In this document: piece by piece, positions 16,099-60,902 of the stretch | Layout of the letters: the number at the start of each line of letters is the position of its first letter | Position numbering within the stretch: position 1 is the first letter of the stretch | Virus record (IMG/VR): IMGVR_UViG_3300036766_000988 | Span: 186,001 to 250,000 of that record | Length of the DNA: 64,000 bases | Direction: 5' to 3' (one strand) | The notes under the pieces: model-generated | What the model saw: the letters and a program-made list of their open reading frames with translations, nothing else | Database searches by the model: none | Told to the model about the DNA's origin: nothing | Made by a program: the position numbers and the translations under genes

Positions 16099-16535
16099 TT
16101 GGCCTCACCCTCGCCGTTGCCGTTCCCATTGGAGCCGTTGTCCTGAAGCATCCGTGCGATGCCGTCGTCGTACGAGCCAAGGATCGCCCGCATCTCCTCA
16201 AGGGCCACCGCCTTCGGGGTGATTCCTCGCCGCATGACGTCTTCGTAGGTCGCCGCAACGACGTGCTTCGCGAGCAGGCTACGGATGAGCTTTACGTCTC
16301 TGGGAGCGAACCCGAGCGACTGCTTTTCCTCACCCATCGTCGGGATCTCAGCTCCCGTTCCACGGGACGCCGTGACCGAGTAGAACGCCGACTTCTTCCG
16401 ACCCGCAGGGTCACGATCCTCTATCGAGAAGGACACCGTGAGCTTGTCGAATTGGATGCTATCTTGGAGCTTCTTCAACCGCTCCGACTGTTCCGGCGTG
16501 AGGTTGCTCAGGGGGCTCTTTTTCTGCTCGTTCAT
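16095..16535 (-). CDS. hypothetical protein
   Basis: 146-aa ORF; GGTGTAT 9 nt upstream. Confidence 0.7.
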   Translation of the reverse strand: MNEQKKSPLSNLTPEQSERLKKLQDSIQFDKLTVSFSIEDRDPAGRKKSAFYSVTASRGTGAEIPTMGEEKQSLGFAPRDVKLIRSLLAKHVVAATYEDVMRRGITPKAVALEEMRAILGSYDDGIARMLQDNGSNGNGNGEGEAK

Positions 16536-18744
16536 GGCTCTTCAATACACCGGAAGTTGCTTGAATTGCTTCTGAAACGGCACGTCCGAAGGCCGTGTTT
16601 CGCTGCACTACCTTGTCGTTTGCAATAGCGGCTTGAACCGATGCGGGGTCGCCTAAAAGCCAGCACTTCTTCTTCGCACGGGTGACGGCAGTGTAGAAGA
16701 GGTTACGCTGCCGCATCCTTCCGTACGCCCTAACGAGTGGAAAGATGATCGTGTCGAACTCGGACCCTTGGCTCTTGTGTACGGTGATCGCATACGCAAG
16801 CCGGACCGTCTCGATGGCTTTGCTTTTGGGGATTCGGACGGGCATGTCCACCCCATCGAAACCGTGGATGCCGATCACGAGATCTTCACGGCCAATCGCT
16901 CGTATTTTCCCCATGTCGCCGTTGTAGACGTTCAGCTCGTAATCGTTCTTGGTGATCATCACTCGATCCCCAAGTCGGAAGTGGATCTTTCCGGCCTTCC
17001 ATTCGGCACTCCCTACATCGGGGTTGAGAGCCTCCCGCAACCGGTTGTTGAGGTTCGTGACCCCCACCACCCCATCGTACTTCGGGGAGAGCACTTGGAA
17101 GTTGGCGTCTCGGCTCTTGAGCTTTTCGGCCATCTTCACGATGAGGTCGCAAAGCATGCTTTCATCGGGGCAGTTGATGAACTGGAAATCCGATGTAGAG
17201 GGGCGAGCCTCAAGCGAGAGAGCTTCACCTCGGTTGATCCGGTGGCTCACCTGGACGATTTCGCTCTGCAACGCTTGCCGGAAGATCTGCGTGAGTCGAA
17301 CATGGGGAACCGTGTCACACGCGATGAGTTCCCGAAGTACGTTACCAGGGCCCACGGAGGGGAGCTGCGCATCGTCTCCGACGAGCACCAACATGGTGCT
17401 TGGATGTAGAGCATCGAGGAGCCGGTAGAACAGCTCCTGATCGACCATTGACATCTCGTCTACGATGACGGCCCCAACGGGGAACTTGTTGTAGCTGTTG
17501 AAGCCCCACCGGTCGCCCGTGTACCCCAGGGTTCGGTGGATGGTGGCCGCGTCCGAGCCCGTGACGGCCGCTAGACGCTTGGCAGCGATGCCTGTGGGGG
17601 CCATGAGGAGGTGGGTGACCCCTGTGGCCTTGAAGAGGCGTACGAACGTCTTCACGAGGGTGGTTTTGCCGGTCCCAGGAAGGCCGGTGAGAACCAGGAC
17701 CCGGTTGTCCACCAACAGCCGAACGCCGTCCCGTTGGGCATCCGATAGCTCGATGGCATGACCCTTCTCGTACTCCGCTAGAAATACAGCGAGATCGATG
17801 TCGAGCTTTGAAGGCTTCACGAAGCTGGCCAGCTTGGTCGCCCCATCACGCTCGAAACGGTAGAACTCGGGGAGGTAGACCCCTGCCTCCATGTCGAGCA
17901 CAAGAGCCTTGCTTGCGACGAGCCTATCGACAGCGTCCATGAGCGCCTTGAACATGTCATCTTGTTCGAAGGGCTCGATGTCTTCTTGCTGCATCATCTC
18001 GTCGAGTAGGGTCGGTAGATCCCCACGCCGGATGTAGAGGTGCCCTTGTTGGGCCTCTTGGCGAAGGATCCAGAGCACCGCTCCCTCGATGCGTCGAACG
18101 TCATTGGGAAGAATGCCGATCCGATGGGCTACTCTGTCTGCCCTGGCGAACGTGAATCCCTCGACCGCGATGAGGCGGTACGGGTTCTGTCCGATGATGT
18201 TGGTAGCTTCGAGCCCGAACGCCGCGAAGATCACTTTCACGATGTTCGAGTTGATGTCGTAATCCTGGAGGAAGACCGAGAGCGCGGAGAGGGAACACGC
18301 CGACTGCCATCCCATGATCGCTCGGTCCAACGTCATCCGCTTCGGATCTTCATCCGTGAAAAGACGCCGCAACTCGTCGGGGGCGTTCGATAGCTTGTCG
18401 TAGGCATCGAGCCCATAGAGGGTCACGAGGAGCTTCACCATCTCGGGATCCTCGAATCCCGATAGACAGTACGAGAGGAACCGCTCGACATCCGGCACTG
18501 TTTTCGCGTAGGGCTTCCATCCGAACGGCCGTACCTGTTTGCCGTACTTCGGATGCTCAACCCATTCCCCCACGATCCCTAGCGGGACACCCGACTTCAC
18601 TTGCACGAGTCCACTCAGGGAACCAGAGACCATGACTGTCTTCGAACGTGTCGCGGGCTCCGCTGCTTCGACACTCATTTCGAAGACTGCGAACCCTTCG
18701 TTCTGATGACGAATGTTCAGAACACGTCCGAAGAAGGTAGCCAC
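16459..18744 (-). CDS. recD2: RecD2-like SF1B helicase
   Basis: GLPGTGKTT, IVDEMSMVD, GDDAQLPSVGPG, YAITVHKSQGSEF; N-terminal HhH region. Confidence 0.9.
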   Translation of the reverse strand: MATFFGRVLNIRHQNEGFAVFEMSVEAAEPATRSKTVMVSGSLSGLVQVKSGVPLGIVGEWVEHPKYGKQVRPFGWKPYAKTVPDVERFLSYCLSGFEDPEMVKLLVTLYGLDAYDKLSNAPDELRRLFTDEDPKRMTLDRAIMGWQSACSLSALSVFLQDYDINSNIVKVIFAAFGLEATNIIGQNPYRLIAVEGFTFARADRVAHRIGILPNDVRRIEGAVLWILRQEAQQGHLYIRRGDLPTLLDEMMQQEDIEPFEQDDMFKALMDAVDRLVASKALVLDMEAGVYLPEFYRFERDGATKLASFVKPSKLDIDLAVFLAEYEKGHAIELSDAQRDGVRLLVDNRVLVLTGLPGTGKTTLVKTFVRLFKATGVTHLLMAPTGIAAKRLAAVTGSDAATIHRTLGYTGDRWGFNSYNKFPVGAVIVDEMSMVDQELFYRLLDALHPSTMLVLVGDDAQLPSVGPGNVLRELIACDTVPHVRLTQIFRQALQSEIVQVSHRINRGEALSLEARPSTSDFQFINCPDESMLCDLIVKMAEKLKSRDANFQVLSPKYDGVVGVTNLNNRLREALNPDVGSAEWKAGKIHFRLGDRVMITKNDYELNVYNGDMGKIRAIGREDLVIGIHGFDGVDMPVRIPKSKAIETVRLAYAITVHKSQGSEFDTIIFPLVRAYGRMRQRNLFYTAVTRAKKKCWLLGDPASVQAAIANDKVVQRNTAFGRAVSEAIQATSGVLKSHERAEKEPPEQPHAGTVGAVEEAPR

Positions 18745-18745
18745 G

Positions 18746-19024
18746 TCAGACCTCGCTCAAGTTGTCGGCACGGAACTCATCGATCGAGTGTCCGCCCATC
18801 TGCCAGAGAGCACCCTGGATAAAGCAGAGCCAGCGCACCGCCTTGTCGGGGTTCGCCACTGCGTTGTTCTTCGCTTCGATGACCATCCAGTAGAGATGCC
18901 CTAGGCTTTCGGCCTGAGAGGGATTGCGGCCATCGACCGGGAATCGAAACGGTCGGACCCCAGGCCTGAGTTCGAAGATAGCCGCGTAGCGATTGAGTGC
19001 TTTGATGATTTGGTCTGCGGTCAT
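18746..19024 (-). CDS. hypothetical protein
   Basis: MTADQIIKAL start with ATGA overlap and GGAG RBS. Confidence 0.65.
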   Translation of the reverse strand: MTADQIIKALNRYAAIFELRPGVRPFRFPVDGRNPSQAESLGHLYWMVIEAKNNAVANPDKAVRWLCFIQGALWQMGGHSIDEFRADNLSEV

Positions 19025-20943
19025 GACTCCACCATCTTGAGGAGATCGTCCTCGGTGATGCACTTCGTCCCGTTCTTGGCCGCTGCTTTGGCCTTCGTCG
19101 ATCCCGATGCGGGGTCCGCCATCACGAGGTACGTAAGCCCCTTGCCTACGCTGGTCTTCACGATCCCGCCGTGCTCGGCAACGATGGCTTCGAGGTCGCT
19201 TCGCTTCCGCACACTCTTGCCGGTAAAACAGAACGAAAAGCCAGTCAGGTTGCCCTGGATCGGGGCCTTGATCTTGACCCCGGCTTTGAGCATCCCCGGC
19301 ACGACAGTCCTGCCAACCTCTTCGACCCATTTCCAGAGGGCCTTCGCCTTGATCGGCCCGAGCCCAGGAACGGTCTCGAATTGCTGCTCGGAACAGCCTT
19401 GGATCTTCTCCCACGTGTCGTATCCAGCATCCATGACCATGCGGATTGTCGATGACGCGCAGAGCGGGATGGAGAGCGCCCCCAGAAGGGTTTCGAGCGG
19501 CAGCTCGTTCTTTTCCCAGAGGAGCCCGAGGAGCTTGTCTGCCAAAGTCTCGGTGATACGCTCGACTTCCGAGAGACTCGGGATGTTGAGCTGGTAGAGA
19601 TCGGCGGGGGTTTTGACCTTCCCGCTGGTCACCAAGCGCTCGATGAGGGTCTCCCCCCACTCCTTTACGTCAAGGGCCGCGATGTACCGCTGGATGCGCC
19701 CCATAGCCTGAGCAGGGCACCCGGCTGTGTTGGGACAGACGAGGTACTCCCCGTCGACCGTGAGGGCGGCTTTGCACGAAGGGCACTCTTCGGGAAAGTC
19801 GTAGTCCCCATCCGCTTCCTCGATCACCTGCGTGACCCTGGGGATGACATCGTTGGCCCGTGCCACCAGGATCCGGGATCCCACCAAGATCCCCAGGTCT
19901 TGGATGTACTTCATGTTGTAGAGGCTTGCGTTCGTGACCTCTGCTCCTACGAGCTGCACAGGATCGAACACAGCAACCGGCGTGATCCGACCCGAGCCCC
20001 CCACCTGCCAGAGGATGTCACGCAGGATCGTCTCACGAGCGACCGCAGCAAACTTGAACGCCACAGCCCCCTTGGGCCGCCCATCCTTCTCCCCGAGCGC
20101 GAGCTGCCGTTCGAAACTGTTGACGGAGAACACGAGCCCGTCGATGTCGTAGTTGAGCGTTTCGCGCATCCCCTCTTGGTAGTCCAATCGGATCGTCTCG
20201 GGAGTCGCCCCACCGGATTGCATCACGGTGACACATGAATTGGGGAGCTTGAACCCCTGGTGAGCAAGCCACTCGAATTGCTGCGCCTCGGTCGAGAAAT
20301 CCTTCCCGTCGGCTACTCGATAGAAGAGCACCGTCAAGTGCTCGCATCCCTTGCCGTCGTACCGCTTCGAGGTACCGGCAGCAGTGTTCCGTGTGTTGGC
20401 CTTGTCAGGGAAGTGCGCCGCATGATCCTGCTTCGTCAGGATGATCTCCCCACGAAGGCTTCCGGTGAACTTCTCGGGAAGCTGGGCCAGCACCCCCTTC
20501 ATCTTGGCGACGTTGGGGGTGATGTCCTCGCCCGTTGTCCCATCGCCACGCGTGATGGCTTGGGTGAAGACGCCGTTCACGTACCTGGCGTGGATCGAGA
20601 TCCCATCGAGCTTCTCGCTCATGAAGAGGGCCTCGATGTCGGAGATGCCGTTGCCCACAGCCCAAACCCCCAGCTCCTCGGGGGTGTTCACCTTGTCGAG
20701 AGAGCCCATCGGGATGCCATGCCGGACCTTCGGCCACTCCGAGGTGGCGGGTACGGGGGCGCCGATGGCCGTGACGGCAGGGGCATCTGCTTGCAGCTCG
20801 CGAAGCTCGTCCACCCAGGCATCGAACACTTCGTCGGTGGTCGTCGGGACCCCGTTGAAATAGTCGAGCCGAGCTTGGTTGATCTGGGCTTGGAGCTTTT
20901 GGATCCGAGCGTCGTTTGCCGCTGCCATCATCTCTTCGAGCAC
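19021..20943 (-). CDS. ligA: NAD-dependent DNA ligase
   Basis: SEKLDG, RGDG, DIDGLV, Zn finger CPSC..C..C, C-terminal BRCT (FCFTG). Confidence 0.95.
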   Translation of the reverse strand: MLEEMMAAANDARIQKLQAQINQARLDYFNGVPTTTDEVFDAWVDELRELQADAPAVTAIGAPVPATSEWPKVRHGIPMGSLDKVNTPEELGVWAVGNGISDIEALFMSEKLDGISIHARYVNGVFTQAITRGDGTTGEDITPNVAKMKGVLAQLPEKFTGSLRGEIILTKQDHAAHFPDKANTRNTAAGTSKRYDGKGCEHLTVLFYRVADGKDFSTEAQQFEWLAHQGFKLPNSCVTVMQSGGATPETIRLDYQEGMRETLNYDIDGLVFSVNSFERQLALGEKDGRPKGAVAFKFAAVARETILRDILWQVGGSGRITPVAVFDPVQLVGAEVTNASLYNMKYIQDLGILVGSRILVARANDVIPRVTQVIEEADGDYDFPEECPSCKAALTVDGEYLVCPNTAGCPAQAMGRIQRYIAALDVKEWGETLIERLVTSGKVKTPADLYQLNIPSLSEVERITETLADKLLGLLWEKNELPLETLLGALSIPLCASSTIRMVMDAGYDTWEKIQGCSEQQFETVPGLGPIKAKALWKWVEEVGRTVVPGMLKAGVKIKAPIQGNLTGFSFCFTGKSVRKRSDLEAIVAEHGGIVKTSVGKGLTYLVMADPASGSTKAKAAAKNGTKCITEDDLLKMVES

Positions 20944-20964
20944 GCGTGACCTCCGCTCCCTCTC

Positions 20965-20990
20965 CTACACCGGGGAGCGGAGGTGTTCAG
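20965..20990 (-). promoter_or_regulatory. bipartite promoter-like motif CTGAAC-N13-GGTGTAG upstream of ligA
   Basis: Exact motif and spacing repeated at other loci. Confidence 0.7.
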
Positions 20991-23584: not shown

Positions 23585-23597
23585 GTATTCGATCCTT

Positions 23598-26379: not shown

Positions 26380-26383
26380 GTAG

Positions 26384-26490: not shown

Positions 26491-26496
26491 AAACTT

Positions 26497-26603: not shown

Positions 26604-26615
26604 GTGAACTGAGAA

Positions 26616-26795: not shown

Positions 26796-26796
26796 T

Positions 26797-26894
26797 GAAC
26801 CACAAGCAGGCGTAGATATGACCCACGCACTTCCAGCCTACACGGCGACTCCCTGGCAAGGGGGCGGTCTCCTTGATCCTACTGCTTGTGGTTC
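26797..26894 (-). ncRNA. putative structured ncRNA (element 1), 98 nt
   Basis: Perfect 13-bp terminal stem GAACCACAAGCAG/CUGCUUGUGGUUC starting 9 nt after the promoter motif. Confidence 0.6.
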
Positions 26895-26903
26895 GTAGTT
26901 TTA

Positions 26904-26929
26904 CTACACCGCTCGACCCCCAAGTTCAA
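26904..26929 (-). promoter_or_regulatory. TTGAAC-N13-GGTGTAG promoter-like motif upstream of ncRNA cluster
   Basis: Exact motif and spacing. Confidence 0.7.
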
Positions 26930-27231: not shown

Positions 27232-27886
27232 CTTCGATCCTGTTCCGAACGGGCTTTCGGTCCTTCCAGTGCTCGTCCGTTTGAACGTGATCTTCGCGAA
27301 CCCACTTGGCCACGTAGTGGGGGAACATGGAGTCGGGCATGTCGCACTGGCGTCGAACCACCACCCCTTCACGAGTTTCGCCAACGTGGCTTGCCCCGAG
27401 GGCATGCCGCTCGACGAGCTTCTGAAGCTCCTTGTCGCTGTAAACGATCACGTTCCGTTCCAGAACGGGTACCGTGGGACACCCCACCAGATCGGCCCAC
27501 TGCTCGACCTCGGCCCAGCTAGCCCACAGGCACTTTCGGAGGTCGCAGACCCCAAAGACCATGAAGTAGGCGGGCAGCCGGTTGTAGCTGATTGTGTGCT
27601 GAGCCCAGAGCCACTCGCCGAAGATCTGCACCCCAGCCGGGATGCGGCTCCTGATGCACGCGTGCATGGCCTTGAGAGCGCTGAAACTTTGGTGGCGGGG
27701 TCGGCCAGCATGGGTGCGGGCGAAGACCGCCTCGTTCTCCAGGCAGACGTTCGAGCCGTCCATCTTCTCGGTCACCATGATGGGGGAGAAGAGCAGGAAG
27801 TCCGTGGACTCGATTCGCTTGTCATCCTTCGTGCAGCCGGGGCTGAACAAGAAATGACCTGTTCGGGGGTACTTGGGGGAGTCCAT
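27224..27886 (-). CDS. ATP-dependent RNA ligase family protein
   Basis: KYPRT, TEKMDGSN (motif I), FGE, EGVVVR, KWVR. Confidence 0.85.
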   Translation of the reverse strand: MDSPKYPRTGHFLFSPGCTKDDKRIESTDFLLFSPIMVTEKMDGSNVCLENEAVFARTHAGRPRHQSFSALKAMHACIRSRIPAGVQIFGEWLWAQHTISYNRLPAYFMVFGVCDLRKCLWASWAEVEQWADLVGCPTVPVLERNVIVYSDKELQKLVERHALGASHVGETREGVVVRRQCDMPDSMFPHYVAKWVREDHVQTDEHWKDRKPVRNRIEGG

Positions 27887-27905
27887 GACATGCCTCGTGC
27901 GGCTA

Positions 27906-27931
27906 CTACGCCACGGGTCCCCCAAGTTCAG
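27906..27931 (-). promoter_or_regulatory. CTGAAC-N13-GGCGTAG promoter-like motif
   Basis: Intergenic, upstream of RNA ligase. Confidence 0.7.
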
Positions 27932-27934: not shown

Positions 27935-29988
<2,054 letters not shown>

Positions 29989-31847: not shown

Positions 31848-33251
31848 TCAGTCTGCCCCCTTGATGTTGGCCACGGGGTACAACCGGTGGGCGACCCTAG
31901 CGATCTCCTCGGCTTCCAGAACCCCCAAGACCGAGTCGAGATCTTTGTAAACGTGAGCGCATTCGTCGAGCGGGATGTGGCGGTGGTTGCTCATGATGCC
32001 TTCGATGGCCACGCCGTTGAACGTACGCTTGACGTTGGCCATCTCGTCATCGATCCGCTGCTGCTTGTGTTCGAGGTCCCGCTTGGCCTTGCCCCGCGCC
32101 ATGATGCGGCCGGATCCGTGGTTGACCGAGCACGCCGTCCTGTAGGCATTCCGCTGCGGAAACAGGACTGCGGCACCCTCGTACATCGAACCGGGGATGA
32201 GGCAAGGGTGGCCGGTGGCCTCCCACGGGGTTCCCACCAGATCGGGATGTCCCGCCGGAAACGCGCGAGTGGCCCCCTTGCGGTGAACGAAGCCCTTCTT
32301 GGTCGTCCCATCGGGAAGGACGAGCGTCTCCTGCTGGACCAGGTTGTGGCTGATCTCGTAGTAGACCTGGACGTCCGATCCGAAGACTTCTTGCGTGGCC
32401 TCTCGAACTCCGTTGACGATGATGTGTCGGTTCGCGACAGCGAAGTTCGCAGCCGAGTTGTGGTGAGCCCAGTACTCCTTGCCGAGGGGCTCGTCCGCAC
32501 GGAGCCACGACTCCTCGCGCCGGTTGGCCGGGAGGTTGCGGACCTTCGCGCCTTCGTAGAAGAAGTGGTTGGCCGTCTGCCAGCCGTATCCGCGCGAGCC
32601 GCAGTGAACCATGATGAAGACCTCGCCCGAGTCGCGGTCGCACTGCATCTCGACGAAGTGGTTACCGCCGCCGACACTGCCGAGCTGGCCGATGACGCTG
32701 CCGTACGCCTTCTCGATCTTCGTGAGATCGGCGGTCTCGTCGACCGGGATGTACTGCCGCTCGCAGAGCCCAGCATCGACCCCGAGGGCCTTCGCTCCGT
32801 AGCGGAGGATCTCGTCGACCTGTTGCTTCTTGAACTTGGGCATCAGCTCCGGCCGGTTGTGTCCCTTGCCGGTTGCGATACGACGCTCGACCTCGGTGAC
32901 CCACTGGCGCCGACGTTCCTTGCTCTTCACGGAACCCGCGTTGAGGTTCGCCTTCATGTAGAGCACGCCGCACGAGATGTCGTAGCCCGAGCCGCCCTGG
33001 ATGATCGTGTTGTCCGTCACGATGACCGAGCCAACCGGAACGCCGTAGCCGACGTGGCAGTCCGGCATCAGGTACGCCCCGATCACCCCTTCGTAGGAAG
33101 CGCCGTCCGCGATCTGCTGCCAACAGCCTTCTTCGGAGGACTCGTAGAGAGCTTCCGAAAGGAAAGCGTGGGCATCTACCCGCATCTTGCCAACCTTCGG
33201 CAGGACGTAGTGGTTGTCGCGGACCTTCTGAACGGCGTACTTGAACGACAT
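31848..33251 (-). CDS. rtcB: RtcB RNA ligase
   Basis: MPDCH.GYG.PVG, GYDISCG, GGGNHFVE, HCGSRG, SHN, HRKGAT, PGSM, HGSGR. Confidence 0.95.
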   Translation of the reverse strand: MSFKYAVQKVRDNHYVLPKVGKMRVDAHAFLSEALYESSEEGCWQQIADGASYEGVIGAYLMPDCHVGYGVPVGSVIVTDNTIIQGGSGYDISCGVLYMKANLNAGSVKSKERRRQWVTEVERRIATGKGHNRPELMPKFKKQQVDEILRYGAKALGVDAGLCERQYIPVDETADLTKIEKAYGSVIGQLGSVGGGNHFVEMQCDRDSGEVFIMVHCGSRGYGWQTANHFFYEGAKVRNLPANRREESWLRADEPLGKEYWAHHNSAANFAVANRHIIVNGVREATQEVFGSDVQVYYEISHNLVQQETLVLPDGTTKKGFVHRKGATRAFPAGHPDLVGTPWEATGHPCLIPGSMYEGAAVLFPQRNAYRTACSVNHGSGRIMARGKAKRDLEHKQQRIDDEMANVKRTFNGVAIEGIMSNHRHIPLDECAHVYKDLDSVLGVLEAEEIARVAHRLYPVANIKGAD

Positions 33252-33259
33252 GGGATCTA

Positions 33260-33285
33260 CTACACCAACCGGGGCTCTTGTTCAG
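33260..33285 (-). promoter_or_regulatory. CTGAAC-N13-GGTGTAG promoter-like motif, 8 nt before rtcB ATG
   Basis: Exact motif; no SD between motif and ATG. Confidence 0.7.
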
Positions 33286-33863: not shown

Positions 33864-34378
33864 GGCGTGCCCTCCTTCTCATCTGGGTCGTCGCGTAGGA
33901 TACGTTCCCACGCGGTCAGGATTTGGGTTCGGTCGACTTTCGGCTCCTCGACCTTGGGCTCGCGCCGACGTGTTCTACGGGTGCGGACGGGTTCTTCGCG
34001 ATACGGACCCTGGGGGGTTCCTCCAACGAAGGCCTGTCGGAGGGCCTCAGCGTTGAAGGCTCCTGTTTCGAAGCCCCCTACGGAGAGATTCTGGTGAACT
34101 TCCAGGCGTTCCGCTTCAAGCTGGAGTTCGCTGGTGGCTCGCTGCATCTCCGCGTTGGCTTGCCGGATCTCTTCCTGCGTTCGTTCGGCTCGTCCTTGTC
34201 TGGCCCTAAACTCCCTGACCCTTCGTTCGACGAGCCAGCGGAAGGCGTACTTCCACGCCTGCGCCGACCACACGATCAGAAGAAAGCCAACCGCTATCCC
34301 GAAAGCGTAGCGACCCGAGGGGCTCAACCAGCTCCACAAACCGGTGAACCAACCGGTGACATCTCCGACCGTGACCAT
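33740..34378 (-). CDS. hypothetical membrane protein
   Basis: N-terminal hydrophobic helix; GGTGTAG 8 nt upstream. Confidence 0.65.
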   Translation of the reverse strand: MVTVGDVTGWFTGLWSWLSPSGRYAFGIAVGFLLIVWSAQAWKYAFRWLVERRVREFRARQGRAERTQEEIRQANAEMQRATSELQLEAERLEVHQNLSVGGFETGAFNAEALRQAFVGGTPQGPYREEPVRTRRTRRREPKVEEPKVDRTQILTAWERILRDDPDEKEGTPCPTIKKTVQKAPQEKPLKRPPLKKTTPKPPTPGPGRTRRG

Positions 34379-34646
34379 GGCCTACCCTACACCTCCTGAG
34401 CTTTCGAGGGCTGAAGAAAAAACGCAACAACCGACCCCTCTCAGGCCCATTACCAGTAGGGGGTTCGACACACCTCCCTTCGACGCTGCGAAGTATTTTC
34501 GACTGCCGCGAAGGATTTTGGCGCTTCCTCCACATAGGAGCGCTCGAAGTTGTCCCGAGAGCCTACGACCTGTCCCGTAAAGAACGGGGTTGTCGTCTTT
34601 CTTCGCTCCGACGTGAACGAAGTGGATCACAGGGGAGCATAACCCG

Positions 34647-38114: not shown

Positions 38115-38166
38115 GTGCCTCTCTTACTGATACACCGCCCCGAACGGTGTAGCGTAGCCACGTGAC

Positions 38167-41036: not shown

Positions 41037-41113
41037 GGGCCCTCATACACCGCTGCTCGAACGCAGTGGAGCGCGAGACGTACGAAATTCTCTTCGGTGG
41101 TGTAGGACAGGGC

Positions 41114-42127
41114 ATGCCCGACAGCCAAGAGGACGACGGTGATGCTCTCGCATGGCTCGAAGAGAACGTCGCAGATTTTCGAACTAGGCCCGAACCCGTC
41201 CCGAATTTGGAAGCCGTCGAAACGGACAACCCGTTGGAAACGTTCTTCCCGCCCCCTCCCGTCGTTCTAGCGCCTGTTCTACCATCGCTTGCGGCCTTCA
41301 TCGAGCCGTGCTCTCTCGGGAACGTTGTAGGAGAGGCCGTACGAGCCGTTCTTCAGATGGTTCCTACGCTGTCATTCGAAAACGCTTGGGTCCTTCTCTG
41401 GCGGCTTCTACTACAGATCGAGCCTCGAACCGGCTTACCGGCCATCATCGACGGCAATGATATGCAGCAGGGGAAGCCCTACTACGAGAGGGCTCGTAGA
41501 GTTCAAGCGTTTTTTGCACAGGTGCTGGCCGTGTCCATCGAGGAGCTTCCAAACAGGATCAGTCTCCTTGTCCGAGCTGGGGTGGACGACGGAGATGAGG
41601 CCGAGCGCCTCCAGAACAACAGGAACACGACCGGCACAGGTTTCGAGGTAGTGTTGCGATGTCTTCTCGAAACTCTCAGCGGGATCCCCTCGAATCGGAT
41701 CCTTGCCAACCGTTTTCTGAACACGGTCCCTTGTTTCAGGCCATCCGAGACTTTGGATCGAAAACCCGACCTACTCGTTGTCGACCGAGATGGGAACGTG
41801 ACCCTGATGCTCACCGTGAAGTGGAGTCTTCGAGGAGACAGGAAGGATGGTCTTGTAGAAGATGCTCGCTCGTGTCGGCAAAGGATCACGACTCCGAACT
41901 TGCGGTGCGGGGTAGTCACCAACGATTTCAATCCAGGACGATTGCGTAAGTTGCTCGTAGCCCATCCCGATAGGGATCCCGAGCACCCCATCTTCGATGT
42001 CATTTATCACGTGGCGCCACACCTTCTGGCAGTTGCCCATGACATGCCCCGTGTCTTGGGGGACTTCGTGGATGAGGGGCGTCTGCGGAGCGTCGCCGAC
42101 CTTTTCAGGGAGTCGAGAGTGTTGTAG
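41114..42127 (+). CDS. PD-(D/E)XK restriction endonuclease-like protein (BsaWI/Cfr10I-like motif)
   Basis: GTGFE, KPDLLV, VKWSLRGDR, D.IYHV; GGTGTAG 8 nt before ATG 41114. Confidence 0.65.
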   Translation: MPDSQEDDGDALAWLEENVADFRTRPEPVPNLEAVETDNPLETFFPPPPVVLAPVLPSLAAFIEPCSLGNVVGEAVRAVLQMVPTLSFENAWVLLWRLLLQIEPRTGLPAIIDGNDMQQGKPYYERARRVQAFFAQVLAVSIEELPNRISLLVRAGVDDGDEAERLQNNRNTTGTGFEVVLRCLLETLSGIPSNRILANRFLNTVPCFRPSETLDRKPDLLVVDRDGNVTLMLTVKWSLRGDRKDGLVEDARSCRQRITTPNLRCGVVTNDFNPGRLRKLLVAHPDRDPEHPIFDVIYHVAPHLLAVAHDMPRVLGDFVDEGRLRSVADLFRESRVL

Positions 42128-42138: not shown

Positions 42139-42426
42139 TCAGTGGTCCCCGGCGGGGCCCGCACGGTACCCAGAGGCGGTCACCCGAAGGAGGCCTGAAC
42201 CCTCCCATGTGAACTCCGGCACGATGGCGGTGAAGAAGATGACAGCTTCGCGGATCACCCGCGTGGCACCGGACGTGGCAGCGGCTGTACCAGGGTTCTC
42301 GATCCCGAGCGCCTTGGCTGCCGCCCTGGGGTCGAGGATGCGATCGATGGGTTCCCGCCAGTCTTTGGGGTTGCAGACCAGGTCGAAGGCCTTCTGGTAG
42401 GCAGCGCGGTCGGTTTCGTAGCTCAT
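42139..42426 (-). CDS. hypothetical protein
   Basis: ATG 7 nt after GGCGTAG. Confidence 0.65.
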   Translation of the reverse strand: MSYETDRAAYQKAFDLVCNPKDWREPIDRILDPRAAAKALGIENPGTAAATSGATRVIREAVIFFTAIVPEFTWEGSGLLRVTASGYRAGPAGDH

Positions 42427-42433
42427 GGGCCTG

Positions 42434-42499
42434 CTACGCCCGTCAAGGGACAAATTCAGCCGAAATTTAGATGCTGAACGTCCGGTTTCCAGGGCGTAG
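42434..42499. promoter_or_regulatory. back-to-back promoter-like motifs: CTGAAT-N13-GGCGTAG (-) and CTGAAC-N13-GGCGTAG (+)
   Basis: 42434-42459 on minus and 42474-42499 on plus, each 7 nt from an ATG. Confidence 0.72.
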
Positions 42500-42506
42500 T
42501 ACGGGC

Positions 42507-42818
42507 ATGGCGACCTCATCCCGAGTCCAGGTTCCCTGCCCCCGCTGCGGTGGTCATGGCGTTCGTCAGAGCTGGCGTCCCGACGCAGGCATCTGTTACC
42601 GCTGTCGCGGCAACAGGGTCGTGACCATCAACGTGGCCCGTCATCAGGCGGCCCTCTGGTTCCTCCGTGCGAAGTACGTCCGCCTTCTGCATGAGGTGCG
42701 GGCGGCAGAGGCGGCGGATCGGGATCCTTCCCTCGCGGCAGAGGCTCTCCAGTACTGCGTTCAGGATGGGCTTCGTGTTCGTGCAGATCTCGAAGCCGCA
42801 GGTGTAGAGGTAAAGTGA
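42507..42818 (+). CDS. DnaJ-type zinc-finger protein
   Basis: CPRCGGHG...CYRCRG. Confidence 0.65.
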   Translation: MATSSRVQVPCPRCGGHGVRQSWRPDAGICYRCRGNRVVTINVARHQAALWFLRAKYVRLLHEVRAAEAADRDPSLAAEALQYCVQDGLRVRADLEAAGVEVK

Positions 42819-43798: not shown

Positions 43799-43824
43799 CT
43801 GAACCAGGCCTTCGGTTGACGTAG
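43799..43824 (+). promoter_or_regulatory. CTGAAC-N13-GACGTAG promoter-like motif
   Basis: Intergenic variant with identical spacing. Confidence 0.6.
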
Positions 43825-43842
43825 TGCTTGCCAAGGAACCAT

Positions 43843-44025
43843 ATGGTCAAGAAAGAGAAGATGATCCGGTTGGTGCTGACGCAGAAGCAAGCGGAGCGCC
43901 TGGGCATCGTCCGCTGTGAGTGCGGGCATCCGCCCAACAACCACTTCGATCATGACAAACGCCCGTGCGCGCACTGCAAATGCAAGGAATACCGGCAGGT
44001 CATCAAGCTCCCACCGAAGGACTAG
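43843..44025 (+). CDS. small Cys/His protein
   Basis: AAGGA RBS; CECGH...H...CAHCKC. Confidence 0.6.
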   Translation: MVKKEKMIRLVLTQKQAERLGIVRCECGHPPNNHFDHDKRPCAHCKCKEYRQVIKLPPKD

Positions 44026-44556: not shown

Positions 44557-44582
44557 TTGAACCGTTGAGGTTCCCGGCGTAG
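44557..44582 (+). promoter_or_regulatory. TTGAAC-N13-GGCGTAG promoter-like motif
   Basis: Intergenic, exact spacing. Confidence 0.7.
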
Positions 44583-44604
44583 CACTTCAAGAGGACATCA
44601 TCCC

Positions 44605-44814
44605 GTGAACACCATCGTACAGAGTGATCGTGATGGACGACTGTTCGTCGAGGTGGACGACATCCGCTACACGGCCGATGATCTTCCGCCCGAGGGTACG
44701 GACGTCGAGGTCGAGCCCTATACGGGCATCAACGATTGTCGTTACGCCGACGTCACGTGGAGCGCCGAGACCCCGTCCGGCTACTGTGACACGACGGCCG
44801 AAGAGATCTGGTGA
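44605..44814 (+). CDS. hypothetical protein
   Basis: GAGGA RBS. Confidence 0.55.
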   Translation: MNTIVQSDRDGRLFVEVDDIRYTADDLPPEGTDVEVEPYTGINDCRYADVTWSAETPSGYCDTTAEEIW

Positions 44815-47487: not shown

Positions 47488-47614
47488 AACTGCTCTGTTT
47501 GACGGAGATCACCTAAACGAGCCTGTTCCCACAGTCTTCCCACAGGGTCTAGAGTGATAAACCGCTTATGGCCCGCGTGCCTACGGACCTACTTTTCTCG
47601 GTGTAATCCGTGGG

Positions 47615-47914
47615 ATGGCGAAGCCTGTGCAGTCCGACCTTCAGGTAACCCGAGCACTGCTCTCGATGGATGTGGGGAAGCTATCCCCAAGTGAAAAGCG
47701 CGCCTTCCAAGGGATGTACGACAACCTCATGGCAGGACAGATCATACGTCTCTCGATGCGGCAGCGAGCGTGGGCCGACGAGGTCTATGACAAGCACAAT
47801 CTCGACAAGGAGCGCCCGGCGGCGAAGAAGATCGCCATTCAGGACAAGTCGCTTCTACCCACGCACCCTCTCGATCAGCTACAGAGGCCGCTCAAGCCAC
47901 CGGGGAGACGGTGA
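47615..47914 (+). CDS. hypothetical protein
   Basis: GGTGTAA 8 nt upstream. Confidence 0.65.
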   Translation: MAKPVQSDLQVTRALLSMDVGKLSPSEKRAFQGMYDNLMAGQIIRLSMRQRAWADEVYDKHNLDKERPAAKKIAIQDKSLLPTHPLDQLQRPLKPPGRR

Positions 47915-48123: not shown

Positions 48124-48152
48124 ACATAGGGCGCTTGGTGTAAACTCAGAGC

Positions 48153-48365
48153 ATGCCCGAATTCAAAACCTACCTACCCAATCCCAGAACTATTGAGGCG
48201 GCCTACTTCGAGAAAGCGGGCAAGTACGACCTCGAAGGGTATCCCATTGAGATCGATACGGACGATACTTACGTCATCAGGACAGAGGATGGGTATGCAA
48301 CCAGGACTGGGGAGTTCTTCCGGAACGACTGGGTTCCAGGTCCGGGTGGGCCCCTACTTCGATGA
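48153..48365 (+). CDS. hypothetical protein
   Basis: GGTGTAA 9 nt upstream. Confidence 0.6.
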   Translation: MPEFKTYLPNPRTIEAAYFEKAGKYDLEGYPIEIDTDDTYVIRTEDGYATRTGEFFRNDWVPGPGGPLLR

Positions 48366-49767: not shown

Positions 49768-50724
49768 CTACACCGCAGGGGGCATCGCGAAGGGCCTGTA
49801 GACAGGCTTGCCGACGAGACGGGTCAGGATTGCATCGAACCTGTCATGGAGGTCCCAGGCATCTCCGTGGCGGCATGCGGGGTCTTCCACCAGACACTCT
49901 TCGAGCAGCTCCCGCACTTGGCGCGGGACTTCGGTCGGCATCTGGTTCGTGAGCGGATGTCCTCCGAGCAGAGCTACGATGCACTTGGCGAGCATGTAGA
50001 GGTCGGTTGCCGGGCTCGGGATCCTCTTTGCCGTGACCTCGGGCGGGTAGTAAAGCCCATACTCGGGCGTGATCGCTTTGATGTGCCCCGGACCTGCGGG
50101 CTCTTCTTCGAGGATGATGTGGGTTTCGTCGTCCTCGTCCATGAGGCGAGCCCATGCAGTAGGCCGTTCGGCGGCCTTTTTCACAGGCTTCGGAGCCTTC
50201 GGGTCTTCCTTGAGCAGAACAGCGTACGACCAGTCGATGATCTTCCCCCCGTGTCCGATCGGATGCACGAGGATGTGGGGCGGGGTGATGTTGCCGTGAA
50301 CGATGTTCTTCTGGTGTACCCACCCGAGGACGACGAGTGCTCGCTTAAACATCCAGGCCATGTCCCGGTAGTCGATCCCCTGCGGATACGCGCGGATCAC
50401 GTCGGCCATCGAGACGTATTCAGCCGAGCCCGTTCGAGCTTCGGTATCGACCGCCTTGGCGAGGATGTTGTACGCCAGTCCTCCGGCCATCGTCCCGCTG
50501 GCGAGAAGCTTCGAGAGATAGCGGTAGAATTTCGTGTCGCTGGCCGTTGGGGGATAGAGCCGACGGAGCATCCTGGTCTCCGTCTGTACGAGGTCGTTGT
50601 CGGCCTTGTTTGCGGCGACCTTCACGATGACCGACGCGCCTTCGTAAGTACCCTCATAGAGGTTGCAAAGGTCGCCTTTCGGCAGCTCACGGGTGATGGT
50701 GACGTTTGGGATGACGGGCGGCAT
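49768..50724 (-). CDS. Ser/Thr protein kinase-like (possibly pseudokinase)
   Basis: VIVKVA, VHGNITPPHILV, IIDWS, YYPPE, TDLYML. Confidence 0.8.
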   Translation of the reverse strand: MPPVIPNVTITRELPKGDLCNLYEGTYEGASVIVKVAANKADNDLVQTETRMLRRLYPPTASDTKFYRYLSKLLASGTMAGGLAYNILAKAVDTEARTGSAEYVSMADVIRAYPQGIDYRDMAWMFKRALVVLGWVHQKNIVHGNITPPHILVHPIGHGGKIIDWSYAVLLKEDPKAPKPVKKAAERPTAWARLMDEDDETHIILEEEPAGPGHIKAITPEYGLYYPPEVTAKRIPSPATDLYMLAKCIVALLGGHPLTNQMPTEVPRQVRELLEECLVEDPACRHGDAWDLHDRFDAILTRLVGKPVYRPFAMPPAV

Positions 50725-50764
50725 GTCTTTATTTACACCGCTTCTCGTGGTGTAGAGATCCCTT

Positions 50765-51220
50765 ATGAAGCTTCCGATCACGTATCCGCTGGTCAAGGCT
50801 CGTCACCCCGAGGCCGTCAAGGACATCTTGACTAAGCTCAAGAAGGGTCGCTCGAAGGAACGCGGATCACGACCCCAAGATCTTACGTGGAATTACACAT
50901 GGGGGGTCCTTTGCGTGGAGGCCCACTTCGGAGAGCTGCCTACGGCCGAAGGTCGTGTTCAGGATATCCTCTCTCGTTGTCGGGTTGGTCTGGCGGCTTC
51001 GAAGGGCCGTTGGTACGAAATGGTGCCACTCGAAGGGGAGGTCCCGCCAGAGGTCCGAGAGATCTACGTGCAGGCCGAAAAGAAGCGGGCTGTGGAAGAG
51101 GCACGTGTCGCTGCGCTCACTCCCCAGGAGCGGGAAGAGGAGTTGCGCAAGCTCTTCGCATCCCTCAGTAAGGACCCTGGTTTCATGGTCATCGAGATTG
51201 GCCGTGAACGGGCTACTTGA
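50765..51220 (+). CDS. hypothetical protein
   Basis: GGTGTAG 9 nt upstream. Confidence 0.65.
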   Translation: MKLPITYPLVKARHPEAVKDILTKLKKGRSKERGSRPQDLTWNYTWGVLCVEAHFGELPTAEGRVQDILSRCRVGLAASKGRWYEMVPLEGEVPPEVREIYVQAEKKRAVEEARVAALTPQEREEELRKLFASLSKDPGFMVIEIGRERAT

Positions 51221-51769: not shown

Positions 51770-52014
51770 CAGACGACCGGCTTGAGACGTCCCTCGATGT
51801 AGGTGACGGCTTCCTGGACGGTGCGGATTTTTTCGGTGTCGTCATCGGGGATGTCCAACTCGAACTCCTCCTCGACGCCGAGCAGAATCTCGACCAGAGA
51901 AAGGGAATCGGCCCCGAGATCCTCGATGAGGTCGCTTTCGGGTTTGACATCTGCGTCCTCGACGTCGAGGTTGTCGGTCAAGATGCGTCGAAGCCTGCTG
52001 AACACGTCCGCCAT
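51769..52014 (-). CDS. acpP: acyl carrier protein
   Basis: EDLGADSLSLVEI...EEEF...IPDDD.EKI.TV.EAV.YI. Confidence 0.92.
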   Translation of the reverse strand: MADVFSRLRRILTDNLDVEDADVKPESDLIEDLGADSLSLVEILLGVEEEFELDIPDDDTEKIRTVQEAVTYIEGRLKPVV

Positions 52015-52156
52015 GTCTGAACGTACACCGGGGAGGGCATCTACGCGAAGGGTCAAGCATCCTTCGCATGTACTAGGGGAAAATTAGGATGATCCCCCCG
52101 AAGTCGGAGCGTAGAAGAACCGGGGTCTCTACATCAACCCCCACCGGAGACTGATC

Positions 52157-52453
52157 ATGTCTGGTCCGAACATCACCAAGGGTACGCGCATCCAGGCCAC
52201 GTGGTTCCAGGCCAAGCCGTTGGGGACCTGGGCGCTCGCGGGAGTCCAGATGAAGGTTACGGGGAGCTTCGTGACCGTGACCGGGGTCTGTCGGCACTTC
52301 CGGGGAGACGATCCGGTAACCCCCACGAAGATCAGGGTCTACATCGACCCCGATCCTGGCACTTGGGGTGGGCCAACCGTGCGCCCCATCGGGTGCTCGT
52401 GCGACCACCCTCATGTTGAGATCAACCCTGATCACATCGTCGCGGTGGTGTAG
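52157..52453 (+). CDS. hypothetical protein
   Basis: GGAG RBS. Confidence 0.6.
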   Translation: MSGPNITKGTRIQATWFQAKPLGTWALAGVQMKVTGSFVTVTGVCRHFRGDDPVTPTKIRVYIDPDPGTWGGPTVRPIGCSCDHPHVEINPDHIVAVV

Positions 52454-52456
52454 GGT

Positions 52457-53296
52457 ATGATCGTGAAGATTGGTCGCCAAGAAGGCATCCCCTACTCCCT
52501 CTCCCGTTGGACGGACGTCCCAGCGGCGAAATGGGAGTGGATGATGGATGCCTTCAAGCAGCAGAAGATGGTCGCTTTCGATCCCAGGACGGCCATCCCT
52601 TCCGAGTGGTCGCTCAAGCCGGAAGACACGCTCGGGCTCTTGTTCTGGACGAAGGACCCGACGAACCTCATCACCGAAGCCGACCTGATCAAGCGTTACC
52701 GGCACAAGATCCACGTTACGCTGACCGGCTGGGAAGAGGTCGAACGGGGTGCGCCAAACCTCGCGTACGGGACCGCGCTTTTGGTCGATACGGTGGAAGC
52801 CTTCGGTCCCGCGAACGTCACCTGGCGGTTCTCGCCAGTGCCGCTGCTTCATCCTGATGAGATAGCCGTTCGCTTTCAGCACATCGCCTACCGGGCCGGT
52901 CTGGCGGGCCTTCGGTCGGTCTACCTGAGCTTCCTCCAGGCAAACGACCTCATGCCCGAGATGCGGACGCTCGAAGAGCGGCATCAGCTCCTCCGGCGAC
53001 TTGCCGACGTGGGAGCCCCGTATGGGATCCAAATCCGCCTCTGCAACGAGGACCGGCTCCTTGTCGGGGCTTCGACCTACCCGAACCTCGATTCTGATGT
53101 CTGTGCGCCCCCGAAAGACTTCGCTCTGCCGAACCGGGAAGCACCCCCCTCTGAAGGATGCGGTTGTGTCCTGATGGCTGATCCATTCACGGTCAACGAG
53201 ACCTGTACGATGGGGTGTCAGTACTGCTACGCCGCAGACGAGAACCTCTCTCCGAAGAAGCGGAACACGACCCGCAGCCTGCCGGTGATCCGATGA
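52457..53296 (+). CDS. DUF1848-family protein (C-terminal CxxxCxYC)
   Basis: SRWTDVPA, FWTKDP, WRFSP, GCGC, CTMGCQYCYA. Confidence 0.8.
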   Translation: MIVKIGRQEGIPYSLSRWTDVPAAKWEWMMDAFKQQKMVAFDPRTAIPSEWSLKPEDTLGLLFWTKDPTNLITEADLIKRYRHKIHVTLTGWEEVERGAPNLAYGTALLVDTVEAFGPANVTWRFSPVPLLHPDEIAVRFQHIAYRAGLAGLRSVYLSFLQANDLMPEMRTLEERHQLLRRLADVGAPYGIQIRLCNEDRLLVGASTYPNLDSDVCAPPKDFALPNREAPPSEGCGCVLMADPFTVNETCTMGCQYCYAADENLSPKKRNTTRSLPVIR

Positions 53297-58437: not shown

Positions 58438-58438
58438 G

Positions 58439-59826: not shown

Positions 59827-59827
59827 T

Positions 59828-60226
59828 ATGGCAGCCGCATATAAGCCCGAGGCTACAGCGCGATCCACGCTTCAAAGTCGTAAGTGGCGTGCGGCTAACA
59901 AAGAAAGAGCCAGTGAGCTTGCTCGTGAATGGAGAGACAAACATCCCGAGCAAACAAAAGTCACAAACCGCAACAGCAAAATCAAGAAGGCATACGGACT
60001 ATCTCCTGAACAATACGATGCTAAGTTGTTGGAACAGGGTGGTGTTTGTGCAATATGCAGAGAGACGTGCGCAACAGGACACGCTCTATGTGTTGATCAC
60101 AACCACACCACGAATGCAGTCCGAGGGCTTCTCTGCAAGAAGCACAACACGATGATCAGCTACGCCAACGAAGACATCTCTACTTTGGAAGCGGCTATCG
60201 CATACCTAAGGAAGTACGGTGCATGA
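59828..60226 (+). CDS. T4 endonuclease VII-family endonuclease
   Basis: YGLS..QY...L..QGGVCAIC...LCVDHNH...VRGLLC...N. Confidence 0.85.
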   Translation: MAAAYKPEATARSTLQSRKWRAANKERASELAREWRDKHPEQTKVTNRNSKIKKAYGLSPEQYDAKLLEQGGVCAICRETCATGHALCVDHNHTTNAVRGLLCKKHNTMISYANEDISTLEAAIAYLRKYGA

Positions 60227-60615
60227 AAGTTCTTGTGTGTGGGTCTAGGGATTGGACTGATCGTAAGGCGATTGAAAGGGAGTTTAAGAAGCTCCCACCT
60301 GGAACGATCATCGTTCATGGAGCATGCCCAACGGGAGCAGACGCTCTAGCAGATGCCGCAGCGATGAAGTTCGGATTCCAGATCAGGCGCTACCCTGCGG
60401 ACTGGGATGGCGAGCTGGCGGCTACGGGATCGGCCAAGGCAGCCGGGCCGAAGCGGAACTCGAAGATGATCCGTGAGGAACACCCGGACAAGGATGGCGT
60501 GCCGATCCACATGGGCCTTGCCTTTACGCTCGACCTCTCTCGCTCCCGAGGAACCAAGGACTGTACGGAGCGTGCCCGCAAGGCAGGCATCAAGGTCGAG
60601 GTCTTCTCGGTGTAG
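60223..60615 (+). CDS. SLOG-superfamily protein (DUF2493/YspA-like)
   Basis: VLVCGSRDW, IVHGACPTGAD, YPADW, AGPKRN, SRGT. Confidence 0.85.
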   Translation: MKVLVCGSRDWTDRKAIEREFKKLPPGTIIVHGACPTGADALADAAAMKFGFQIRRYPADWDGELAATGSAKAAGPKRNSKMIREEHPDKDGVPIHMGLAFTLDLSRSRGTKDCTERARKAGIKVEVFSV

Positions 60616-60623
60616 TGCTCGCC

Positions 60624-60902
60624 ATGGTGATGGTCGCCCCCAGTCCTACGCACATCCAGGTGGCTCAACGCCTTTACGAAGCCCATCGGGTACCTGGGGA
60701 TCAGAAACCTTGGGAGCACCTATCAGACGACACCCAAGCACGCTGGGTGACGGTGGCCAAGGCTGCTGCGGCCTTGCTCTACGAACAGGCTGCGGATGAA
60801 GTCTGGGGGTTCATGGCCTCGGCGGAGGACTGCGGCAAGCAGGTAGACAAGATGACCATGTCGAGCGCTGTCGTCCACCTGAAGCGTCTATCCAAAGAAT
60901 AG
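60624..60902 (+). CDS. hypothetical protein
   Basis: GGTGTAG 8 nt upstream. Confidence 0.6.
   Translation: MVMVAPSPTHIQVAQRLYEAHRVPGDQKPWEHLSDDTQARWVTVAKAAAALLYEQAADEVWGFMASAEDCGKQVDKMTMSSAVVHLKRLSKE

Follow-up and report, generated by a model that had tools for sequence, protein, structure and literature searches.

Promoter-like boxes at fixed distances from start codons suggest leaderless gene expression in a clade of uncultivated huge phages

In Deinococcus-Thermus, a −10 motif adjoining open reading frames (ORFs) gives leaderless mRNAs (PMC12340547; Deinococcus deserti, PMC4007540), and leaderless genes led by a −10 element are also found in mycobacteria (PMC3898074, PMC4633059). Here we analyze a 64-kb window, bases 186,001–250,000 of one linear 252,183-bp IMG/VR virus record (IMGVR_UViG_3300036766_000988), in which two short elements, the hexamer GGTGTA (class A) and the bipartite GCTGAAC-N15-CGTAGTA (class B), recur at fixed distances before start codons. 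The record is a fragment of an uncultivated huge phage, with 59.5% GC and a CheckV completeness of ~53%, and the contig covers about half of the genome. Its boxes resemble the bacterial systems in that a −10-like element stands at a fixed short distance from the start, no Shine-Dalgarno (SD) sequence intervenes, spacing from the start codon is important, and SD-led genes exist alongside. Counted from the A of the box, the distance peaks at 10/11 nt for class A and at 9 nt for class B, compared with ~6–8 nt from the hexamer end for the TANNNT type. However, Deinococcus-Thermus and mycobacteria use TANNNT with the host primary sigma factor on the host genome, whereas here GGTGTA, or CGTAGTA with a GAAC box, occurs in a phage clade. 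Only the TA is common to both; the final T of TANNNT is not conserved, and the bases required here are the GGTG upstream of TA.

Several phage systems share part of this arrangement. Thermus phage phiYS40, studied by Sevostyanova et al. in 2007, reportedly expresses its middle and late genes largely as leaderless mRNAs from a −10-like element with no −35 box; it is likewise a large phage, but is said to be cultivated and low in GC, with a TATAAT-like element and 5′ ends that have been mapped, and we claim neither homology nor a shared motif. T4 late promoters consist of TATAAATA, recognized by gp55 together with gp33 and the sliding clamp. Like class A, they have one strict element near −10 and lack a −35 box, and the machinery presumed here, host core polymerase plus small phage sigma-like proteins, is also T4-like, the gene for one candidate, a 212-aa protein, lying beside the clamp loader. 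However, the T4 late consensus differs from class A, and T4 late mRNAs are leadered and carry an SD. In cluster K mycobacteriophages, 13-bp start-associated sequences just upstream of starts include an SD and are thought to act in translation; they, too, are phage-specific conserved motifs at a fixed place before many starts, but SD character is lacking in the present boxes, which fail SD tests. Differential RNA sequencing of phiKZ found no leaderless transcripts, and this phage uses its own multisubunit polymerases (PMC8244752). phiKZ-type jumbo phages are like the present clade in being giant phages with their own promoter consensus sequences, and unlike it in their polymerases, none of which was detected here.

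Knowledge of huge phages comes almost entirely from metagenomes. Sigma factors and gp33 in jumbo phages are treated in PMC7824862; this jumbo-phage comparison and the huge-phage survey PMC7162821 mention sigma factors, and neither promoter motifs nor leaderless expression. Within the limited coverage of our literature search, no prior description of the motif or of leaderless expression in huge or jumbo phages was found. The principle is familiar; what is new is the motif, its clade-wide conservation in uncultivated huge phages, a second, ECF (extracytoplasmic function)-type class, and candidate specificity factors.

Based on sequence comparisons, we propose, with a probability of about 75%, that the boxes are promoter elements that start transcription on the A of the start codon or no more than a few bases away, using the host core polymerase and phage specificity factors. 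In this mechanism, ~70 genes on the 252-kb contig would be made as leaderless mRNAs and translated without an SD. The initial annotation of the window had called such mRNAs widespread; the number corresponds to roughly one gene in five, and not to most genes. The class A element would occupy positions −15 to −10 or −16 to −11, with no −35 element. In class B, GCTGAAC would lie at −34 to −28, followed by a 15-nt spacer and by CGTAGTA at −12 to −6, which would put the −10 box in the canonical register. The host core polymerase is presumed to be used because searches of nine related records revealed no polymerase gene, and specificity would come from phage proteins, the candidates being a 290-aa ECF-like sigma factor and the 212-aa protein, which has sigma region-4 and helix-turn-helix (HTH) features. 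Boxes further upstream would give leadered, SD-bearing transcripts, e.g., that of GroEL.

Class A and class B boxes before start codons

GGYGTA occurs 81 times in the window, compared with 27.2 ± 4.8 times in dinucleotide shuffles. The initial annotation had listed 14 starts preceded by a single motif, GGYGTAN, at a fixed gap, and GGYGTA was present at that gap and on that strand in all 14. To measure the gap independently of annotation, each motif copy on the contig was scored for its gap to the start codons of ORFs with at least 60 aa. The resulting histogram had sharp peaks for GGTGTAN at gaps of 8 (31 of 170 copies) and 9 (22 of 170), with ~3 copies at other gaps, and for GGCGTAN at 7 (9 sites); it was flat for five control hexamers and the reverse complement. 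The fixed gap was thereby borne out. The single motif was not: GGTGTA and GGCGTA are not variants of each other, since they stand at different distances (10/11 versus 9 nt, counted from the A of the box to the start codon, as below) and an upstream box accompanies the CGTA type alone. The GGCG cases at 42426 and 42507 do have the sequence at the gap given for them, and they belong to class B.

Class A is the strict hexamer GGTGTA with its A 10 or 11 nt before the start codon. ATG follows at distance 10 in 28 sites and at distance 11 in 16, with few GTG and almost no TTG codons. On the upstream side there is neither a −35 box nor any conserved position except a flanking pyrimidine, and no other shared motif was seen upstream of the boxes. 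All 18 single-base variants lost the association in three genomes (each at most 3% of sites), compared with 44 of 170, 35 of 217 and 49 of 225 sites for GGTGTA itself (16–26%). This includes GGTGAA, GGTGGA and GGTGCA, in which GGTG is kept and TA altered and which were associated with starts at 0–2% of sites. Class A is distributed throughout the contig, but is missing from the first 20 kb, where very large genes sit. In one related record (G001, see below), the idea that the TAR in the box is a mere stop codon of the upstream gene was not supported, as only 1 of 31 such triplets closes a frame of at least 60 codons.

Class B is GCTGAAC-N15-CGTAGTA, with the A of CGTA 9 nt before ATG. TGAAC-N15-CGTA occurs 32 times on the contig versus ~2 times at neighboring spacings, and CGTAG is followed by ATG at distance 9 in 28 sites. 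When the sites were anchored on ATG, the consensus was GCTGAAC at −34 to −28, 15 variable bases, CGTAGTA at −12 to −6, and C at −1. Spacers vary from copy to copy while the boxes are invariant. Class B contains no purine-rich core and no complementarity to the anti-SD. The ~40 copies per half genome cluster in small-gene arrays at genome positions 20–30, 90–120, 140–160 and 220–231 kb. ECF (group 4) sigma factors recognize promoters such as TGAAAC-N16-CGTA (Bacillus subtilis sigma-W) or those of Mycobacterium tuberculosis SigL, and they are typically autoregulated. Class B likewise has an AAC-containing −35 box, a CGT(A)-containing −10 box and a rigid spacer, and it is found upstream of the gene for the 290-aa protein, itself a putative ECF-like sigma factor. 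It differs from ECF promoters in a spacer that is 1–2 nt shorter and in its ~40 copies, which would serve arrays of small phage genes, each expressed as a leaderless unit.

Class B elements often contain the stop codon of the gene before them. In 17 of 32 sites, an open frame of 60 codons or more ends at the TGA of the −35 box; in 11 of 32, such a frame ends at the TAG of the −10 box. The result is one-gene cassettes with a spacer of ~29 nt (e.g., window 42476–42509). A third, sigma-70-like class, TTGAC-N17-TA.T., was represented on the contig by isolated examples with no spacing peak. One of them, TTGACT-N17-TACTCT at genome position 185042 (−), lies 6 nt before the ATG of a gene outside the window (184136–185008), and would be a host-type promoter that is also positioned for a leaderless start.

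The presence of an SD depends on the distance of the box. An SD-like 4-mer was found in 6 of 50 class A sites at distance 10–11 and in 1 of 20 class B sites at distance 9–11, i.e., in 7 of 70 box-adjacent start codons, in agreement with the initial observation that the gap mostly lacks an SD; the frequency at random positions is 13% (in a slightly wider window). By contrast, the 4-mer was present in 8 of 8 class B sites at 16–36 nt and in 7 of 9 class A sites at 21–27 nt. These leadered, SD-bearing examples include the genes for GroEL, the ligase and the 290-aa sigma-like protein.

The bases around the start codon are also biased. C occupies −1 in 73%, 70% and 88% of three putatively leaderless sets, compared with 41% of SD-led genes, and C(−1)A(+1) is the usual transcription-start signature. 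The leaderless set uses ATG, GTG and TTG 61, 8 and 1 times versus 76, 26 and 14 times in SD-led genes (p = 0.001), corresponding to ATG shares of 87% and 66%; the 87% share is consistent with the known dependence of leaderless translation on AUG. If the start is placed at the A of ATG, CGTAGT of class B falls at −12 to −7, the canonical place of the −10 hexamer, and the TA of class A falls at −12/−11 or −11/−10. Every sequence-based test that we ran favors the initial proposal that transcripts begin at the initiation codon, with the start probably at or within a few bases of it, and disfavors an SD role for the boxes. The nine records contained no match to a phage-encoded IF3 or ribosomal protein S21, possible helpers of leaderless translation.

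The box-adjacent starts in the window are as follows (window coordinates).

16533..16551 (−): class A and ATG 16535; box 16546–16551, distance 11; 146-aa ORF
33249..33266 (−): class A and ATG 33251 of the RtcB gene; distance 10; GAAC box 15 nt upstream of TGTA
34376..34393 (−): class A and ATG 34378; distance 10; 212-aa ORF
41034..41051 (−): class A and GTG 41036; distance 10; 245-aa ORF, divergent from the ATG 41114 gene
41099..41116 (+): class A and ATG 41114; distance 10; 337-aa ORF
42424..42457 (−): class B, GAAT-N15-CGTAG, and ATG 42426; distance 9; 95-aa ORF
42476..42509 (+): class B, GCTGAAC-N15-CGTAGTA, and ATG 42507; distance 9; 103-aa ORF
42801..42817 (+): class A and GTG 42815; distance 9; ATG at 42818; 70-aa ORF; the least typical site
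47600..47617 (+): class A and ATG 47615; distance 10; 99-aa ORF; box kept in the ortholog of record G003
48137..48155 (+): class A and ATG 48153; distance 11; 70-aa ORF
50722..50767: divergent class A pair TACACC-N9-GGTGTA with ATG 50724 (−) and ATG 50765 (+); entire intergenic space 40 nt
52012..52029 (−): class A and ATG 52014; distance 10; 81-aa ORF
52447..52465 (+): class A and GTG 52463; distance 11; 277-aa ORF; absent from the initial list
60609..60626 (+): class A and ATG 60624; distance 10; 92-aa ORF

The window also has four sites with leaders of 3–8 nt and seven in which the box is followed by an SD-containing leader; the sites with a box at a greater distance include the following.

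20941..20971 (−): class A, 23 nt before the GTG of the NAD-ligase gene; GAAC box upstream; SD in the leader
27884..27929 (−): class B, 21 nt before ATG 27886; SD-like stretch in the leader
29594..29638 (−): class A, 37 nt upstream of GroEL ATG 29596; GGAG-type SD in the leader
38112..38169: divergent class A pair TACACC-N9-GGTGTA with short leaders; ATG 38114 (−, distance 17) and ATG 38167 (+, distance 16)
43801..43845 (+): class B, 20 nt before ATG 43843; SD in the leader
44559..44607 (+): class B, 24 nt before GTG 44605; SD in the leader
62737..62770 (+): class A, 26 nt before ATG 62768; SD GGGAGG in the leader

Divergent gene pairs such as that at 50722..50767 carry back-to-back boxes of the form TACACC-N4..9-GGTGTA, and the intergenic region of ~40 nt is an inverted repeat. 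Similar pairs are present in G003, for example at 45670–45710 and 206196–206234.

Conservation in related phages and candidate specificity factors

Eight related huge-phage records (G001–G008; 241–437 kb, two complete) were compared with the present contig (G000). A profile of the 290-aa protein led to three distant relatives with 29–33% identity on viral contigs of 398, 323 and 312 kb, the first of which has direct terminal repeats and is complete. GGTGTA-N9/10-ATG occurs 47, 28 and 55 times in these contigs, versus 3, 8 and 3 times in the backwards-read control. Five more records bearing the 212-aa protein (241–437 kb, one complete) contained 41, 78, 65, 47 and 28 copies, versus 3, 5, 2, 3 and 5 in the control; the start-spaced excess is therefore seen in 8 of 8 related records. 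These whole-record counts replaced an earlier conservation test on 20-kb loci around the 212-aa gene (27 viral contigs), where 5 of 124 GGTGTA copies stood at distance 10/11, too few to be informative. Three comparison phages showed no clear excess: a 735-kb uncultured phage (12 versus 10) and Bacteroides phage DAC16 (4 versus 0), both without the 212-aa protein, and a 485-kb uncultured phage with only a 40%-identical 212-aa homolog, in which the excess was weak (13 versus 5).

G001 and G003 show the same distance peaks, 10 and 11, and the same need for both Gs; neither record has class B. Orthologs of leaderless class A genes have an in-frame GGTGTA-N9/10 start in 6 of 9 cases in G003, versus 4 of 48 other genes (p = 4e-4), and in 3 of 7 cases in G001, versus 3 of 54. 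The N-termini of the orthologs match residue for residue among the present contig, G001 and G003. For the gene at window position 52463, for example, both orthologs begin at the same residue, behind GGTGTA-N9/10-ATG. The motif is kept across genomes of 48–62% GC, whose orthologous proteins are 32–57% identical. The complete 437-kb record G007 has a lineage-specific extension of class A, GGTGTA-Y-R-G-T-R, often GGTGTATGGTG, and the preferred form is GGTGTAATA in G001 and GGTGTAG in G003. The hexamer is constant, and it seems to be the downstream half of class A that changes from lineage to lineage.

The 212-aa protein is encoded at genome 185119–185757 (−), 244 nt upstream of window base 1 and beside a clamp-loader/replication module in both G000 and G003. 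It contains a sigma region-4 domain (PF04545, 52 bits; PF08281, 34.5 bits), and residues 43–109 align to at least 20 sigma4 structures with Z scores of 8–9.7. As a region 2 was not found in it, the protein falls short of a complete sigma factor. Besides region 4 it has another HTH-like stretch, and in 20 aligned homologs the predicted recognition helices of both are invariant. Its identity in G001 and G003 is 61–67%, compared with 30–33% for the 290-aa protein and 30–57% for other proteins of these relatives. More than 780 homologs were found, the best 120 of which are all at least 66% identical, some of them on contigs of up to ~570 kb. The 212-aa protein looks like a hallmark gene of the clade, and the near-invariant protein appears to track the invariant GGTGTA; its candidacy as the factor is suggested by this co-occurrence.

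The 290-aa protein (genome 135002–135874, outside the window) was found through a weak Sigma70_r2 match (Pfam E = 0.0017). Two of its 13 homologs carry PF04542 and the JGI name sigma-24, and the family alignment has blocks like regions 2.1–2.4 and a C-terminal HTH; the protein also has a large insertion in region 2. Its AlphaFold model (predicted local distance difference test score, pLDDT, 74.6) matched mostly sigma region-2 domains among the top VIA-align results, with Z scores of only 5.5–7.1. Foldseek searches with the 290-aa and 212-aa models found nothing at E ≤ 0.001, a PDB profile search with the 290-aa family alignment gave nothing significant, and a sigma profile search of the genome contigs revealed no relatives. 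The 290-aa gene is preceded by GCTGA..-N15-CGTAGTAG, which is invariant in four orthologous regions with a variable spacer and is followed by an SD-containing leader. All five further records (241–437 kb) carry a homolog. Distant homologs occur in genomes without class B, and in distant relatives the gene is preceded by TTGAC-N17-TA-type boxes, not by class B.

No RNA polymerase beta or beta′ domain was detected with Pfam in the nine records, two of them complete. A T7-type RNA polymerase was not detected either, in a search without a valid control, and no gp55 or gp33 homolog was identified, although no search was aimed at these proteins. More tentatively, at rather less than even odds, GGTGTA may be the site of a clade-defining system in which the 212-aa sigma4/HTH protein, with or without the 290-aa ECF-like sigma factor, acts on the host core polymerase and directs initiation exactly on the AUG.

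Alternative explanations and implications

Several points weigh against the promoter interpretation. GGTGTA is not a known −10 consensus, and in G000 and G003 the final T of TANNNT is not conserved. About 60–100 of the 170 GGTGTA copies are intragenic with no start nearby, and may be due to chance or have another role. Folding of the first 30–50 nt did not differ between leaderless and SD-led genes. The promoter register is deduced from spacing, the gene starts from ORFs, a crude codon model and ortholog alignment, and the pairing of protein and box from co-occurrence. Very divergent phiKZ-type polymerases could escape Pfam. The public sequencing runs containing the sequence comprise one sediment DNA library, probably its source, and no RNA run, and the leaderless 5′ ends are thus inferred.

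The boxes might instead be operator or "stoperator"-like sites of a phage regulator, e.g., the 212-aa HTH protein, with the promoters elsewhere and the mRNAs leadered. A strict hexamer does resemble the site of a sequence-specific double-stranded DNA binder more than a degenerate −10 element, the back-to-back TACACC-N4..9-GGTGTA pairs resemble inverted repeats, and a very conserved HTH protein co-occurs with the motif. We nonetheless consider such operators unlikely. Most sites are single and point toward the gene, the 40-nt divergent intergenic regions leave no space for another promoter, and class A boxes share no further motif upstream. Moreover, genes at distance 10–11 lack the SD that a leadered mRNA would need, whereas genes farther from the box have one, C(−1)A(+1) is a start-site signature, and class B is bipartite, as are sigma-dependent promoters. 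The divergent pairs also speak against the idea that the boxes are RNA sites at which an endoribonuclease trims polycistronic transcripts at a fixed distance, so that mRNAs become leaderless through processing, as read-through transcripts would be required on both strands. The fixed start distance and the lack of an SD are also compatible with processing, and the phage encodes the RNA-repair and RNA-handling proteins RtcB and a Ro60 homolog. However, it is not obvious what the class B upstream box, which is rigidly spaced by 15 nt and is not predicted to pair, would do in RNA; the same boxes precede leaders that keep an SD 16–36 nt downstream, which cleavage at +10 explains no better; and no candidate nuclease was identified. 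Processing is in our judgment quite unlikely.

A role in translation, in which GGTG or the whole box is an initiation signal of a leadered mRNA, either an atypical SD or a "start-associated sequence", is very improbable, as the initial annotation had already argued for GGTG. The box does stand at a fixed distance from the start codon, and GGTG complements part of the anti-SD (CACC of the 16S rRNA 3′ end). However, pairing with that part would call for ~3–7 nt to the start, and the gap from the end of GGTG to the start codon is 11–12 nt, which is too far and also lies beyond the ~5–10 nt usual for an SD. T5 and A6 are as essential as the Gs, as seen from the unassociated GGTGAA, GGTGGA and GGTGCA, although an SD would tolerate changes beyond its paired core; class B behaves in the same way without anti-SD complementarity; and an ordinary GGAG-type SD is used by other genes and by genes farther from a box. 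Finally, the class B units are highly similar and lie in small-gene arrays, as might be expected if the excess had no function and arose from composition or from repeated intergenic cassettes that recombination had spread. This explanation is hardly credible given that shuffles and backwards-read controls have no excess, that spacers differ between copies while the boxes are invariant, and that the motif is conserved over genomes of 48–62% GC with diverged orthologs. None of these rival readings explains the SD dichotomy, C(−1)A(+1), the bipartite class B and the 40-nt divergent regions together.

If GGTGTA is indeed the site of a clade-defining transcription system, a clade of uncultivated huge phages would possess a dedicated leaderless expression channel that is independent of SD/anti-SD pairing, and the second, ECF-type class of the G000 subclade would drive self-contained one-gene leaderless cassettes. 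If the boxes are promoters for leaderless mRNAs, leaderless expression on this scale would come from phage-specific rather than host-type promoters, which bears on the separation of phage from host expression. A simple sequence rule would then locate transcription units and the true starts of genes across a large clade, and gene callers that expect an SD will misplace some starts. The strict hexamer could mark contigs as clade members, and the two promoter consensus sequences and two candidate specificity factors would be testable in vitro without cultivation.

Gene content and RNA elements

The functions encoded by the record include a clamp loader, a RecA/UvsX-like recombinase, RecD2, an NAD-dependent ligase, ribonucleotide reductase, GroEL and RtcB (window 31848–33251), and a Ro60/TROVE homolog is encoded at genome 33759–35561; many of its large proteins matched no family. 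A megablast search with 7.5 kb of the contig against phage records found no match and no close relative, and a search via RecA found no close relatives among viral contigs. Among the phage records, no cultivated clade member was found, the sole match being the uncultured 485-kb record with 40% identity. The clamp-loader gene of G003 (L049:16132-18225) holds an intein with a LAGLIDADG domain, and the same kind of Pfam scan found no intein or LAGLIDADG match in the clamp-loader gene of the window (1693–3285). G003 is flagged as a provirus by IMG/VR, yet its first 20 kb consist of phage replication genes syntenic with the replication module of the window.

Two class A boxes in the window precede predicted RNA structures.

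15170..15254 (−): class A and leader hairpin; box 15249–15254, hairpin 15236–15170, z = −3.7
26797..26910 (−): class A and branched RNA; box 26905–26910, 13-bp closing stem from 26894, distance 11; no ORF

The initial annotation had taken stems at both sites as independent marks of the transcription start. Both agree with a start at this spacing. At the second, the 13-bp closing stem of a branched RNA of ~98 nt (26894..26797) opens exactly 11 nt past the A of GGTGTA. The first does not represent a free-standing non-coding RNA. Position 15239 is the predicted start, 3 nt before a 5′ leader hairpin that begins at 15236, has a folding energy of −35.5 kcal/mol, and pairs with the GTG start region of ORF 14195–15178; the hairpin could serve translational control, or the GTG could be a wrongly assigned start.

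No Rfam family reached its gathering score in the window, and blastn found the ~520-nt non-coding stretch behind the second box (26380–26910, −) not to be conserved in G001 or G003. This stretch contains a tRNA-like module at 26500–26559 (Rfam tRNA, 24 bits, E 0.018), whose acceptor-like 3′ strand ends in an encoded CCA. Because the phage encodes a Ro60/TROVE homolog and RtcB, it is conceivable that 26380–26910 gives rise to a Y-RNA-like or tRNA-like RNA.

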